The translations under genes were made by a program, and so were the position numbers. This document shows, piece after piece, positions 21,301 through 55,400 of a DNA stretch of 64,000 nt. Below the pieces are notes generated by a model, which saw nothing but the letters and a program-made list of their open reading frames with translations, did no database searches and was not told the origin of the DNA. Numbering within the stretch: position 1 is the stretch's first letter; each line of letters starts with the position of its first letter. The stretch comes from Bugula neritina. Its lineage: Eukaryota > Animalia > Bryozoa. Where the stretch lies: assembly GCA_964035545.1 (NCBI GenBank), contig OZ037766.1, forward strand, positions 32,664,773 through 32,728,772. Reading direction: 5' to 3'.

Positions 21301-24300
21301 ACTACCGCACTCTCTACAATACAACATGTTGATACAGTTCCTGCTCACAGTGGTAAGGTTACTATAGTATACTTCATCTTAACAATGCTATATAAGCTTG
21401 AATCTGCTATTAATATATCTGCAACTAAACTGTATAGTATCTTTAGATTTATTTATAAGAATCTCCACTGAAGTTTATGAAAAGAACTTTAGGGTTTAGT
21501 AAGTTCTAAATTGTTTAAATGATGGCACCATCATTCTTGCAGTTTTTTCACTTTCTACTTGCTCTTTTCTATTTGCTGTTTCATATTGATTTTTTATTTA
21601 TTTGTCAGCTCTCAAAAAATAAATTACCTAATATAAAGTTCAGTAAGTTAATTTTGATAGCATGCATGCATATTTGATCTGTTAATGTTTTGGATAGGTA
21701 AATAATGTTTATTATTCAATGTGTAATTTTTTTAATGAAGTACAATACTAAAGAATATTGCATAATATCAATGCTTCATCGTTTCTCAGTTCTTGATATC
21801 TATCTATAAAACACAAGAAGTCTATAATTAAGTTAAGAACTATCTTTCTTTTCATGAGTTTTCTTTGCATTATCTAAATTACTTTTTCAGTTAATTAACT
21901 TTCTCCCGTTTATCACCATGTCTTACGGTTTCCGATTTAGCCTCTAGGTAACGTAATTCTGCACAGCCTAATTAATTAGTGATTTCCATCTAACTTTATT
22001 GCTTGTGTCTTTGCTATTCAATTTCCATGCTTTCATCTTAGACTTCTCATATCCATCCACCAATACTTTGGTCTTACTCTGTTTCTCTTACTTTCAACTC
22101 AGAGGTTGCCAATACTCTTTATGTCCTCCTCTGAATCTTTCTAAAATACATGGTCATATACTATTCAATGTAGCAACTTCGCAATACTATAAACCTAGAG
22201 AATCTCAGATTAGATGTAGAAACTACATGAGCCTAATATTATGTTTTACTATCTTGTGTTACATAATATGACAGTTATATAGCGGTCCTTTTGTAACAAT
22301 TTTTGGGTTTGAGTATATTTTCTGCAAATATGTATTCAAGGTACCTTGTATGGTAATGTTTGTGGAGGTGTCAGTGTGTGAAGGTCTTTTAATGTGAAGG
22401 TATCAGTATGTGAAGGTGTCAGCATGTGAAGGTGTCAGTATGTGAAGGTATCAGTATGTGAAGGTATCAGTATATATGTGAAGGTGTCATTATGTGAAGG
22501 TGTCAGTATGGGAAGGTATCAGTATATAAAGGTGTCAGTATGTGAAGGTATCAGTATGTGAAGGTATCAGTATGGGAAAGTGTCAGCATGGGAAGGTATC
22601 AATGCGTAAAGGTATCAGCAGTCTTACTTTAGACTACTGCTCATTTATACAGATCTCACACATAACCTGCATATTGTACTTTCCTTGCATGACTGATAGG
22701 AAAACTATTTAGCATAATACAAAATTGTTTTAAAACAATATTTTTCAAGTTTCTCTATTTTTCTGAACAACATTTGTTTTTGTTATAGTAGATATTGAAA
22801 TGCCAGGTAGATACATTCTAACTAATAAAGTTCGTGATGTCACCAACTGGGCTGGAGCCAATGTCACTATGCCTGGTATCAACTTCACCATCTGTTCCTG
22901 GGTTAAGATTGATAGTTGGCATGAGACAAGAAGAAGTACAATTCTCAGCGTGGCTACATCAGGTGTGAAAAAGGATGACTTTAAATTAAATTAATGTATC
23001 AATCACTAATTATTGCAATTAAGTATTTATGTGTAATATTTGCACAAAAGTACATAATACTTCAAAGTATATAATAATGGTTTATTGTTTGCAGGTATAA
23101 TAAATTTTTTTATCACTGGTTTTAAGAGTCTGATTTGCATTAAATTAAATGTAGGAGAAGTTATATTGCATACAATTTTGACACTCTAAAATAAAGTGTA
23201 TATTTTATTACAATATAATTTCTAGCAAATCTGAACTGGTTGATCTTTGAATTGGGAAGAAATGAAGTAGCTGTTGTAATCAAAAGCCACCACCGCTCTG
23301 AATATAATTTTGAGACAGAACTGAGTAAGTGGTACTTCTACTGTGTGTCAGCTGAGGAAACTCTGGCAGACTACCAGTTTACGGTAAGCTTTACTCTATA
23401 ACTAGAGCTCTAGTACAAATCACTTCTCAAACTACTTCACTCAGCCCTAAATCCCTAAACATTGGGTTTACTTTTTGCTGTATTTCATTGCGTTAAAATA
23501 GCATTTATATGTTAATAATTTGATAAAATGCAAAACTTAAGTAAAACCAGTTAATGCCTTAAGCACCTATTTATAACATTTTTTATTTTCAATTAAAGTA
23601 TATTATTCTTGTGGTTGTGTGCCTGGTTTTGTAGGTAAACATTGGTGAAAATTGGGCTAATTGGAACTGGGTTCAGAGCTTTAGCAAAATTTTTGATAAA
23701 AATGTATTAAGTTCCCAACAATGCTACGCTGTGGGACTAGTGCTGCTCAGTGAACAAGATGAGTTGTTTGGTGAGTTTGTTTTTCAACAGGTATATCTAC
23801 AGATATTTCCACTAGAGATTAATTTACAAGACAAAATTCTTTTTTTTTAAATCTACCAAAAGCTTTCAACTGGCTATAATGCACTCAAACGCATGCAAGG
23901 TGTAAAGCTTCCAATAAAATGACATTATAAAATAACTGTTTTCCAGGATAAATTAAAAACTTAATTTTATTCTTATGCATTTTGCAAAGTCACAGCGACT
24001 CCTATAGCTGACAAAAGCAGTATAACTGTAGAATCAGGAGCTCAGTTATAGTTAATTATTGCCTTAAGAAATGCTGAGTAGAATGGCTACTATATTTTAC
24101 TGTTATAAGAATTGCTTATGGCCAACATCTAAAATGCTATTCTCTCAACACACATGCATTCTAGTTGATTTTTGTTTACTCGTTCTGTTTGCTCTATATA
24201 AGTGAGTTTCAGATAATAAAAATAAAGAACAGACTTGAAATTATTTCTGCAACTTATGTCTGTCTTGTTTTGCATATTATTTTATGAAATTTGAAACCTA

Positions 24301-52400: not shown

Positions 52401-55400
52401 TATCGCAAAGTAATCAAGACATAGGTATTTCATTAATGTCTATTTATAAAATCAAATTTTTGTATTTGGATGTATCAAACATCGTTACATTCTTTATTTC
52501 TTAATTATCAAACTTGTTTTAACTTTCAAAGTGCAAATTTTCAGTAAGTTAAGCAATTCGTAAAATACATGTGAATGCTTTTTCTATTTTCCATGCAATG
52601 AGAGTATAGATGAATATTAGAAAGTTGCATTCTTTTTACCTGACGTGTAAGTAGTCATGCTGAGAATTGTACTTTTTCTTGTTTCATGCCAACTATCTAT
52701 CTTAACCCAGAAACAGATGGTAAAGTTGATACCAGGCATAGTGACATTGGCTCCAGCCCAGTTGGTGACATCACGAACTTTATTAGTTAGAATGTAGCTA
52801 CCTGGCATTTCTTCATTGTCTGCTACAAAAATGTAAAATATACCAAAACTACCTTAAAATTTTCTGAAATGCATATATTTCAATAAATGACAAAGTTAGA
52901 GAGCTTTATTTTCTGCGTAAAAGAGGCCTAAATATAAGCATATATATATAAACTTATAGGTTCTGTGAATGTCATGACTCATCCATCCGTAGTAAAGCAA
53001 AATTAGGAAATAGTGCTTTGTAAAACTTTAATATGTGTGCCTTTCTACTAGCGCTGTGCGTGGGCACATTTCATTTCAAGCTCATCAATAACTTTTTAAC
53101 CAACTTTTCTAATGGATTTCGATGCAACTAACTATATATATATATATATATATATATATATATATATATATATATATATATATATATATATATATATATA
53201 TATATATATATATATATATATATATATATATATATATATATATATATATATATGTATATATATATATACATATATATATATATATGTATATATATATATA
53301 CGTGTATATATATATATATATATATATATATATATATATATATATATATATAATATAATAAGCAGCATACTGTAGGGAGGCCGTTATGTATAGAATACAG
53401 TATTTCAAAGCTCTGAGTGCACCGAGCTGCATTTCTCTTTTGATGGCTTGACAATCATTATTCTAATGTATTAGACACAGGTTACTTTATTATGAACATT
53501 CAAAGTGAAGCTGTATATAACTTATTACTTTGATTAAAGACTGCTTACCTTTGATCAAAAGCCATTTCTGTTATTTGAAAATATAAATTATGTTTTTATC
53601 TTTTAGATGAGGTGTTTTATTTTTTTGTATTTTAGATATCCTATTCAATGTGAACTGCTATTAATCATGTATATTAAAGAACATATGGTAAGAGGCAATT
53701 AGTAAATGTACAGTATTATGTTAACATAGATTGAGTCAATTCCCTCCAGTTTTTCATCATACTTTTATCATTAGTATAGTAGCACTTAAAACATATTAGA
53801 GAAGTTTTGTCAATAAAATAGGCTCTACGGAAACCACATATCAAGTGTGTTTGAATAATACTGTATCTGTTTGTGACAGTGTCTGAGTGACTTAGATTGT
53901 AATGTAGTTTTTCTATTATAGCCAACTTGGCAACAAGTTCTTAAGTCTATTCACTCTCAAATCGTACCCTTGAAATATAATGGGAAAAATAGAAATTATA
54001 TAAACTGCTGTAAGTAAAAATATAAATCAAAAAGTCAGAGAAACACCATGAAATCAGCACAGATCCAAACAAGATTACATTAGCTATTGTAATCCAAGTG
54101 AAACTCACAAAATGGATGCACAGATAAGATTCTTTGTCATCTCAATGTCAAAACCGGTGGCCTATTCAGAGTGTAAATGTTAGAATTTAAACTGTGTGTT
54201 CATAATAATGTTGTAGCAAATGTAGTGTTGAAAGAGGGAAGTTAATAAATGTTGCTCTGCGGCTGCTTGATCAGAACACACTGACCTGTGCTGTGCTAAG
54301 GACAGTGAAATATTATAGCAACAGCACTACCAGCTAAGAATAGCTTTTGATGAATGTATTAATAACGCAAGAAAGCTTCAATGATTGGTAGCGTACCAAT
54401 ACAAATATACTAACCAGCAACAATCATTATTTGCTAGCATTTTTTCCAACTGCCTTCCGCATTTTTAAACAGTAATAGTTTTACACATATAGTTAAAAAT
54501 TTCTCTTATATTTATTAGTGGACAAATATAAGTTTAGTTTTTTGTTCTGCACATTTTTACATTAAATGATGCTAAAAAAAATTATAAATGGACATTATTT
54601 TATTTCATCCTGAATTATAACTTAAAAATGAATTTGGAATAATATTTTTCCTTGCATTTTGCTGTTCTTTCTTAAAATAGTTTATAGTTACTTTGGTAAG
54701 AGTTACGCTCTTTTATTTAAATGAGAGTAACTTAAGAGCCAAATGATAAAACTAGTTTAATATCTTGTAATAAGACTGAATAGCAGACAGAAGCAGAAGT
54801 TGAGCAGTGCATCATGGGTGTTATGAACAAAACTCTACTAATGTTGAGAGGAACAATTTTCAGTGCACAAAAATAATTTACTGACATTCAACGTAAAATT
54901 ACAAAGCTTTTCAGCAATTATAAATCTTTAATGATCAACATTTTGAGAGTTTAAGCAATTTTAAAGCTGAAATTGTGTTACAAATTCTAAACAACTGAAA
55001 CTTTCACCAGTGTTTGTAGTTAGGGTAATATAAATATGTGTATTTTCTTAATTACTACCAGACATGGCTCTACACTGCGGCTTAACAATTTGTAACGCTT
55101 TTTGCTAGTTTTTGTGAAGGTGAACTTATACATACCTTCTGATATGAAGCTGTCTGTGGCATTCAGGGTGTGGGTCATAGGAAGAGGTGAAGCAGCCTGG
55201 ACTGCAGTTGTGGCAGCAGCAGTAGGTTCTAATGCCAATGAAGAAGGAAACTCTTCACCTATGTTTCTTTGAATATACAGAGCTCCAGGTTTCAATGTGA
55301 ATACATCACCTTCGTTCCTGCAGCTGGAGAAGCCACCCAAGAAGCCATATTGAAAGGTTGAAGCCCAGATATTCAAACACGAGATAGAGCCCACTGCAAG

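Follow-up and report, generated by a model that had tools for sequence, protein, structure and literature searches.

The clustered protocadherins are tandem paralogues in which regional homogenisation of silent sites lies beside unconverted, positively selected recognition domains, and their converted tracts extend over hundreds of codons of one large exon, are over 99% identical and have raised GC3 (PMC1852091). A model of divergence-dependent conversion has been described (bioRxiv 10.1101/2025.10.29.685298; PMC3966226), and in Arabidopsis halleri HMA4, where three young copies of the whole gene are converted in every exon, purifying selection combined with such conversion preserves the similarity of silent exon sites but not that of the introns (bioRxiv 10.1101/2025.10.29.685298). 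The C-reactive protein (CRP) of Limulus is an invertebrate pentraxin multigene family with identical N- and C-terminal parts and a differing middle, made of single-domain oligomers with demonstrated phosphocholine binding; two of the three properties cyclic oligomer, Ca-dependent phosphocholine binding and cross-reactivity define a CRP (PMC6503050). In immunoglobulin framework/CDR, MHC and CEACAM, conversion and selection lift dN and dS in the binding regions above those of the frameworks (PMC3966226, PMC7042247). Secreted proteins with repeated pentraxin domains are present in hemichordates and amphioxus (XP_070546223.1, XP_078594462.1).

The stretch of Bugula neritina DNA analysed here, a window of 64,000 nt, holds a tandem cluster of predicted secreted pentraxin-like and PAN genes. 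Each gene is predicted to encode a signal peptide, then at least one pentraxin-like module and finally a PAN domain (Table 1), with the exon boundaries of B1-B6 set by AG/GT sites and open frames. The six B modules are spread over four separate genes, B6 being on the minus strand; a single long gene with six B modules is ruled out by four signal-peptide exons and four stop-bearing PAN exons. The mechanism is already known from protocadherins, HMA4 and Limulus CRP, and the family is newly described: no description of this pentraxin-PAN family was found in the literature searched, and hardly any immune or recognition genes of bryozoans have been described. In contrast to the protocadherin tracts, those of Bugula are islands of 80-160 nt in small exons inside one domain, are 90-98% identical and also host module-shuffling crossovers. 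Unlike HMA4, the cluster has at least eight old modules, and some exons escaped conversion. Its multi-exon, multi-module genes with PAN depart in multi-domain layout from CRP. The family differs in fold from immunoglobulin, MHC and CEACAM, and no sign of somatic diversification or of balanced allelic polymorphism was seen here. The hemichordate and amphioxus proteins score above the Pfam Pentaxin cut-off and retain HxCxTWxS, and none of those examined has PAN.

Table 1. Predicted exons, modules and segments of the pentraxin-like/PAN cluster (positions within the window).
Feature	Position	Strand	Remarks
Gene 1 signal-peptide exon	15322..15379	+	hydrophobic 19 aa, GT donor
A1 pentraxin-like module	15730..17477	+	a 15730-15906, b 16154-16311, c 16510-16645, d 17199-17477
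A2 module	18846..21352	+	a 18846-19022, b 19321-19478, c 20258-20393, d 21074-21352
B1 module	22792..24530	+	a 22792-22962, b 23226-23383, c 23635-23770, d 24327-24530
Exon a homogenised core, B1 example	22812..22895	+	tree dS 0.55
Exon b variable 5' half, B1 example	23228..23311	+	sole segment with omega > 1
Exon d homogenised core, B1 example	24344..24496	+	tree dS 0.50
B2 module	25611..27688	+	a 25611-25781, b 26051-26208, c 26289-26421, d 27485-27688
B3 module	28767..30273	+	a 28767-28937, b 29128-29285, c 29367-29499, d 30070-30273
Gene 1 terminal PAN/apple exon	30875..31113	+	PAN_1 E 0.0014; core homogenised cluster-wide
Gene 2 signal-peptide exon	32364..32421	+	
B4 module	34209..35650	+	a 34209-34385, b 34619-34776, c 35045-35177, d 35447-35650
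Gene 2 PAN exon	36263..36495	+	
Gene 3 signal-peptide exon	40110..40170	+	
A3 module	40562..42915	+	2-nt insertion near 42813, giving a frameshift in exon d
B5 module	44063..46821	+	a 44063-44236, b 44868-45022, c 45556-45688, d 46618-46821; mosaic
Gene 3 PAN exon	47337..47575	+	
Gene 4 PAN exon	49472..49710	-	
B6 module	50199..52822	-	a 52822-52640, b 51982-51828, c 51496-51364, d 50402-50199
C1 module	55136..57591	-	exons a, b, d located; exon c not found
Gene 4 signal-peptide exon	58125..58182	-	
PAN exon of next gene (E1-B7)	63166..63398	-	gene runs past window edge

Profile searches were run exon by exon. Exon d alone matched Pfam PF00354 with 14.5 bits (E 0.03) and neuronal pentraxin-2 with E 0.009, and its best non-bryozoan matches are hemichordate and amphioxus tandem multi-pentraxin proteins; the paralogue P0015 reached 24.7 bits against PF00354, the curated cut-off being 25. 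The assignment of exon b to the pentraxin region around CRP residues 60-81, made in an earlier note on this DNA, agrees with an alignment to neuronal pentraxin-1 (profile E 9e-4). In hhalign comparisons with canonical pentraxin domains, exon a gave 86% and exon d 97%, and exons b and c matched weakly in colinear position. Judged by these alignments, the module is homologous to pentraxin domains along its length. An Atlas model of the paralogue P0053, which is not a B module, matched a pentraxin cluster (TM 0.81 by target), and the predicted structure of a C7 paralogue (pLDDT 50) gave no PDB or fold match. The pentraxin signature (PROSITE pattern) is HxCx[ST]Wx[ST]; it does not occur in the B modules, where the His and Trp around the Cys are absent. 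When the CRP calcium ligands D60, N61, E138, Q139, D140, E147 and Q150 were compared by alignment only, equivalents of N61, E/D138, Q139, D140 and Q150 were kept in all modules checked and that of D60 in 9 of 15, and the E147 position was variable. One invariant Cys in exon a and another in exon b align with the canonical disulfide pair C36-C97 of CRP (residue roles in PMC13698038). The PAN exon reached 18.8 bits against PAN_1 (E 0.0014; cut-off 21.4) and four core Cys are conserved in PAN; a sister contig gave a weak PAN_1 match.

Every motif quoted in the earlier note was found where it had been placed. Among the six B modules, 2 of 57 nt are variable in the exon a core, and 1 of 48 and 7 of 54 nt in the first and second exon d cores, which bears out the near-identity described. 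The sharp variation of the quoted stretch of exon b (47 of 57 nt) is borne out too, and most B paralogue introns fail to align to each other. The homogenisation ascribed to exons a and d applies to their cores, with variation at the 3' end of a and at either end of d, and the PAN exon core forms a third homogenised island. Hypervariability stands for the 5' half of exon b; the 3' half is converted among B1, B2, B3, B4 and B7. Mean pairwise pS of the B modules is 0.15 in a, 0.48 in b, 0.54 in c and 0.09 in d. Uniform dS across exons, which the earlier note had named as contrary to its reading, was not seen: synonymous divergence at codons for the same amino acid only was 0.105 in a plus d against 0.456 in b plus c (permutation p=5e-5). 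By segment, tree dS is 0.55 in the a core, 0.50 in the d core, 3.19 in b 5', 4.60 in c 5' and 3.45 in c 3', and the longest identical runs have a median of 55-57 nt in a and d versus 11-16 nt in b and c. The contrast comes mostly from suppressed divergence of a and d, not from rapid change of b-c. Protein constraint as the only cause of low dS is ruled out by the D-gene d cores, with pS of 0.29-0.36 between lineages, and by the c 3' motif, where the protein is conserved (pN about 0.1) and yet pS is 0.26-0.43, so that constraint on the protein alone does not yield low pS.

Ectopic gene conversion among the cores, as the earlier note had proposed for a and d, is well supported by the dS mosaic, by tree conflict and by lineage-specific silent variants. 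In AU tests, b or c sequences reject the trees of a and d, and a and d sequences reject those of b and c (p<0.005). The introns of a sister Bugula lineage, whose sequences are short-read metagenome assemblies and possibly chimeric at repeats, pair one to one with those of B1, B2, B4, B5, B6, B7 and B8. Paralogues within a lineage are closer than copies between lineages in the d core (p=0.003), and not significantly so in the a core (p=0.20) or the PAN core (p=0.23). Non-orthologous d cores have lineage-specific silent variants in common (permutation p=0.003), and the B1-B6 pS in exon d is 0.02. Since intron orthology is kept across lineages and paralogous d cores are closer than orthologues, ectopic conversion is indicated. 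The pattern is replicated on another chromosome, where C7 genes 1 and 2 have pS of 0.58 in a, 0.75 in c, 0.14 in d and 0.13 in PAN; their introns cannot be aligned, and their consensus is another one. The second lineage and second cluster serve as controls. Furthermore, the PAN of a distant D gene is B-like in its core (pS 0.09) and not in its tail (0.79). A GENECONV-like test on silent sites only (24-25 sites, too few) gave no result, and PHI-like tests inside exons were not significant. Some observations count against the conversion model. In a more distant PAN-pentraxin family of another organism, d core pS (0.18) is barely under intron divergence (0.11-0.25). Fourfold-site GC is 0.39 in the a core, 0.39 in b, 0.29 in c and 0.32 in the d core; the cores lack the GC rise seen in fugu protocadherins, and there is no signal of GC-biased conversion. 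Raised silent-site GC in converted tracts is common, not obligatory.

The mosaic of dS, the conflict between trees, the intron orthology kept between lineages and the partner switches are observed features, and they are probably explained by germline, region-limited concerted evolution of a tandem secreted pentraxin-like and PAN family. Purifying selection would keep the cores of a, d and PAN and a subset of b 3' halves similar, and this similarity would permit homology-dependent ectopic conversion, which levels silent sites too. Introns and fast-changing loops may have diverged past the limit where conversion works, a feedback that we infer. The cores are the only long shared stretches, so unequal crossovers would resolve there; each would combine the beginning of one module with the end of a different one, and the number and order of modules would shift. 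In exon b, the 5' half, aligned to the pentraxin ligand-pocket region, would have escaped conversion, and exon c may simply be unconverted. At a scale below the single exon, the cluster is a compact natural case of the divergence-dependent conversion model, and whole-gene trees or dN/dS mislead for families of this type.

The diversifying selection proposed for the binding face was recovered in modest form in b 5' (omega 1.40, M8 vs M8a p=0.0045) and not in c 5' (omega 0.67, p=0.16). It is possible, though we lean against it, that conversion acted as proposed with no positive selection in b-c, which would then display their true duplication age under relaxed constraint. In pairwise comparisons of b and of c, pN is lower than pS, a one-ratio test fails to reject omega=1 in b 5' (p=0.11), and orthologue pN there averages about 0.13, close to the neutral level, all of which agree with that view. 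The M8 result itself argues against it: the observed statistic was reached once in 115 neutral simulations and four times in 115 that included conversion (simulated p about 0.01-0.04), and b 5', a segment picked after data inspection, gave no signal of internal recombination (PHI p=0.75). The b 5' segment is probably under weak diversifying selection, and this 28-codon patch, with its putative ligand-face position and possible recognition role, can be named from alignment as a candidate determinant of ligand specificity.

If concerted evolution proceeds by steady neutral conversion, the cores of the two lineages should show a net synonymous divergence of about 0.08-0.11, and the observed value of 0.012 counts against this (87 silent sites; diversity 0.097 within and 0.109 between lineages; variants mostly singletons). 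The family consensus might instead be frozen because the nucleotide sequence of the cores is itself maintained, either through majority-biased conversion or because selection acts on the DNA or RNA, for instance on its use as recombination arms or as a regulatory RNA target. This is unlikely. For a lineage divergence of 0.09-0.115, steady neutral conversion gives P<0.02, the fraction of silent sites that differ between orthologues of the unconverted D and E is about 0.20, and the C7 d core shows the same pattern; however, orthologous cores still differ by about 0.115-0.136, equal to flanking DNA (0.115), the C2 and C7 cores carry different consensus sequences, and the net value is equally well explained if homogenisation came in a burst around the time of the split and conversion then slowed. 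Still more doubtful is a version in which the cores are actively held as recombination arms and the cluster is a module-shuffling device for a recognition repertoire with a diversifying pocket; if true, it would explain why the consensus is nearly frozen in both lineages and both clusters.

Flanking introns change partners within exon a (B5, B7), within exon d (B1/B2 and sister B1) and in PAN; thus these cores also host crossovers. B5 is a mosaic with a B1-like upstream intron, a B8-like 3' end of a and B6-like b-c. Of the earlier suggestion that a and d act as homology arms, conversion and crossovers in a and d are retained, and exchange of b-c as one cassette finds a fitting case only in B5/B6, which share b-c (100% support) while their exon a and flanking-intron partners differ. 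That event is consistent with cassette exchange and is old. A programmed or frequent, possibly somatic, exchange of b-c blocks between a and d arms generating receptor diversity, in the manner of VLR or antigenic-variation systems with their silent donor cassettes, is very improbable: in five to seven modules b-c and their introns are still tied to their flanks across the lineage split, independent contigs (the only such material) match B1/B2 with no such recombinant joints, private mutations in every core show that turnover is slow, and no donor pseudo-cassettes or free b-c donors occur among the mapped copies.

Collapse of similar exons to a consensus by assembly or polishing, conceivable for the short-read sister contigs and favoured by nothing in the window, can be dismissed there, as the window comes from a HiFi/hifiasm assembly of QV 53.7, private variants mark every core, B1/B2 and their introns recur in independent short-read contigs and two lineages show the same pattern. 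In these independent contigs, depth piles up over the a and d cores.

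From 15.3 kb onward, the window contains four complete genes and the last part of a fifth. They begin with a signal-peptide exon, go on with one or more four-exon modules (exons a, b, c and d, with phases 1-1-0-1-1) and finish with a PAN exon. The assembly to which the window belongs, on contig C2, is tzBugNeri2.1, a hifiasm assembly of HiFi reads (PMC11480708). Beyond both its sides the cluster goes on with B7, B8, A4, E1 and a D1-D2 gene, more pentraxin-PAN genes are found on contigs C7 and C3 and at other places on C2, and one paralogue carries the annotation B. neritina KAF6033926.1. 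Homology searches of the spliced model, run exon by exon, aligned exon b to residues 57-94 of neuronal pentraxin-1 (E 9e-4) and exon d to neuronal pentraxin-2, and in profile comparison exons a and d matched canonical pentraxin domains. By alignment, the modules keep both cysteines of the disulfide and the majority of the calcium-ligand positions, and they lack the HxCxTWxS motif. Judged by these matches, the modules are divergent pentraxin-like domains and the family is pentraxin-like, short of a CRP assignment.

Gene composition and repeat positions in the window
Feature	Composition	Strand	Window position
Gene 1	A1-A2-B1-B2-B3-PAN		
Gene 2	B4-PAN		
Gene 3	A3-B5-PAN		
Gene 4	C1-B6-PAN	minus	
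16-base tandem repeat			18070-18400, 22360-22620, 25170-25310, 28350-28480, 43760-43930

The contrast described in the earlier note, of near-identical cores in exons a and d against variable exons b and c, silent sites included, was confirmed by silent and amino-acid-changing differences per site (pS and pN), same-amino-acid codons and core counts. Among B1-B6, pS is 0.15 in a, 0.48 in b, 0.54 in c and 0.09 in d, and pN is 0.09, 0.32, 0.29 and 0.09, respectively. When only same-amino-acid codons of these modules are counted, pS is 0.105 for a and d versus 0.456 for b and c (permutation p=5e-5); variable sites number 2/57, 1/48 and 7/54 in the quoted cores and 47/57 in the quoted part of b. The grain of the mosaic is finer than whole exons. 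Tree dS is lowest in the cores of d (0.50) and a (0.55), followed by a 3' (1.55), b 3' (2.53), b 5' (3.19), c 3' (3.45) and c 5' (4.60), and the b 3' half is a tract common to B1, B2, B3, B4 and B7. A third stretch levelled in this way is the core of PAN, and it extends to the D gene, which is distant elsewhere (pS 0.09 in the core, 0.79 in the tail). B1-B2 and their introns were reproduced, with a difference of about 1%, by short-read contigs of an independent run, and these contigs stack up over the cores of a and d.

A sister Bugula lineage is represented by contigs from JGI samples that carry the B. neritina mitochondrial accession as a label. Compared with the window's genome, its flanking DNA has diverged by 0.115 substitutions per site, and silent sites in modules D and E by about 0.20. 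Its introns correspond one-to-one with those of B1, B2, B4, B5, B6, B7 and B8, while most paralogues have introns that cannot be aligned with each other, so the modules must long predate the lineage split. Despite this age, the silent difference between B1 and B6 in exon d is only 0.02. Lineage-typical silent variants are common to non-orthologous d cores (p=0.003), and in AU tests data from b or c were incompatible with the a and d trees, as were data from a or d with the b and c trees (p<0.005). Protein constraint as the sole cause of the likeness was rejected, since the c 3' motif is conserved in protein and not at silent sites. The C7 cluster has the same pattern with its own consensus: between its genes 1 and 2, whose introns are unalignable, pS is high for a (0.58) and c (0.75) and low for d (0.14) and PAN (0.13). 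Intron orthology, shared d-core variants, AU conflict and the c 3' control all support the proposal of gene conversion among exons a and d, and the cores appear to be kept alike by ectopic conversion limited to constrained stretches. Conversion so confined has been modelled for HMA4 (bioRxiv 10.1101/2025.10.29.685298), and conversion in immunoglobulin frameworks has been discussed (PMC3966226). Following these papers, growing divergence would shut conversion off, a feedback that fits the lengths of identical runs, which are 55-57 nt for a and d against 11-16 nt for b and c. In the pentraxin-PAN family of a more distant organism, variable patches lie at similar places and levelling of the d core is weak. 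Pentraxin-PAN genes on contigs L031-L045, which come from another animal (a probable bryozoan), vary in patches of b, of c and of the first part of d.

The core consensus is nearly frozen. Across 87 silent sites of the three cores, where variants are mostly singletons, diversity is 0.097 within and 0.109 between lineages (net 0.012), a pattern repeated in the d core of C7. A steady neutral conversion model predicts a net of 0.08-0.11 at lineage divergence of 0.09-0.115 (P<0.02 with within-lineage diversity matched); with lineage divergence set to 0.06, P is about 0.02-0.04. Either a burst of levelling near the split followed by slower conversion, or majority-biased conversion, or nucleotide selection accounts for the low value.

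The partners of flanking introns switch within cores, and cores therefore host crossovers over evolutionary time. In the HiFi assembly, B7 resembles B6/B4 as far as the 3' portion of exon a and B2 beyond it. B5 resembles B1 in its upstream intron, B8 at the 3' end of a and B6 in b-c, and B1 and B2 have a common intron after d and different introns before it. In short-read contigs, which could be misjoined, sister B1 is B1-like before exon d and B3-like after it, and leads directly to PAN. The homology-arm idea stands as far as crossovers inside cores are concerned, but a swap of b-c as one block fits B5/B6 only; their sharing is older than the lineage split, and other modules keep b-c with their flanks. 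No pointer to programmed or somatic exchange was found in the assembly and contigs compared. A 39-nt identical patch at the exon c start of non-orthologous modules (L028 3077-3115 and B7; Bonferroni p 0.08) may mean that variable patches are occasionally exchanged too.

Other rearrangements were seen. On sister contig L018 (4643-11140), the B4 gene, flanked by two PAN exons, lies within the D-gene locus, 43 kb from where the window's genome has it and in the opposite orientation. Either crossovers in PAN cores really transposed it, or the short reads were misjoined. At window 18744-18769, ahead of A2 exon a, an A-type intron is joined to a stub of a B-type exon a start, one more junction at the place where exon a begins. 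In the C7 cluster (L011 ~9240-9295), the third gene's PAN exon abuts a piece of the next gene's exon a, a deletion junction. The 16-base tandem repeat in introns upstream of A2, B1, B2, B3 and B5 marks shared ancestry.

Diversifying selection on the binding face, also proposed in the earlier note, received moderate support in b 5' and no significant support in c 5'. In pairwise comparisons of b and c, dN stays lower than dS. For exon b of both lineages, codon models favoured a class above 1 (M8 vs M8a p=0.003); the b 5' half alone gave omega 1.40 (M8 vs M8a p=0.0045; one-ratio test against omega=1, p=0.11), and positive selection was not significant in c 5' (omega 0.67) or a 3' (omega 0.72). 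The observed b 5' statistic was reached in 1/115 neutral simulations and in 4/115 with added conversion tracts. Because the segment was chosen after inspection, this is moderate evidence that the b 5' half may be under positive selection. By alignment, the stretch comes after the D60/N61 equivalents and covers the region of F66 and E81 in CRP, whose numbering we take to carry over through the neuronal pentraxin alignment. The single 3D model built (pLDDT 50) was too poor for placing variable sites. Roles of the two CRP residues follow PMC13698038.

Overall, the earlier observation is upheld and its interpretation partly so. The family behaves like a conversion-levelled scaffold with a diverging putative recognition patch. 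The same process is known from protocadherins (PMC1852091), CEACAMs (PMC7042247), HMA4 (bioRxiv 10.1101/2025.10.29.685298) and, within pentraxins, Limulus CRP, whose subunits have identical ends (PMC6503050). No description of the pentraxin-PAN family itself was found in the literature searched.

Several features of the locus stand apart. A 2-nt insertion in A3 exon d (window 42805-42825) causes a frameshift, with a short deletion downstream, and gene 3, the carrier of B5, may be broken in this haplotype. The C1 exon c was not found at window 55420-56779 (-), where the intron contains a GT repeat and unrelated sequence. Orphan PAN exon fragments lie between genes 4 and 5 at 58987-59145 (+) and 62006-62083 (-), and are present in the sister lineage too (L026 ~12100-12500). 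Ahead of the cluster, window 1-12650 holds two unrelated multi-exon genes with minisatellite-rich introns (minus strand to ~6900; plus strand ~8940-12650). The B8 exon c is interrupted by an 8.6 kb element (C2 ~32738960-32747580), a very recent LTR insertion whose two 745-base terminal repeats are identical.
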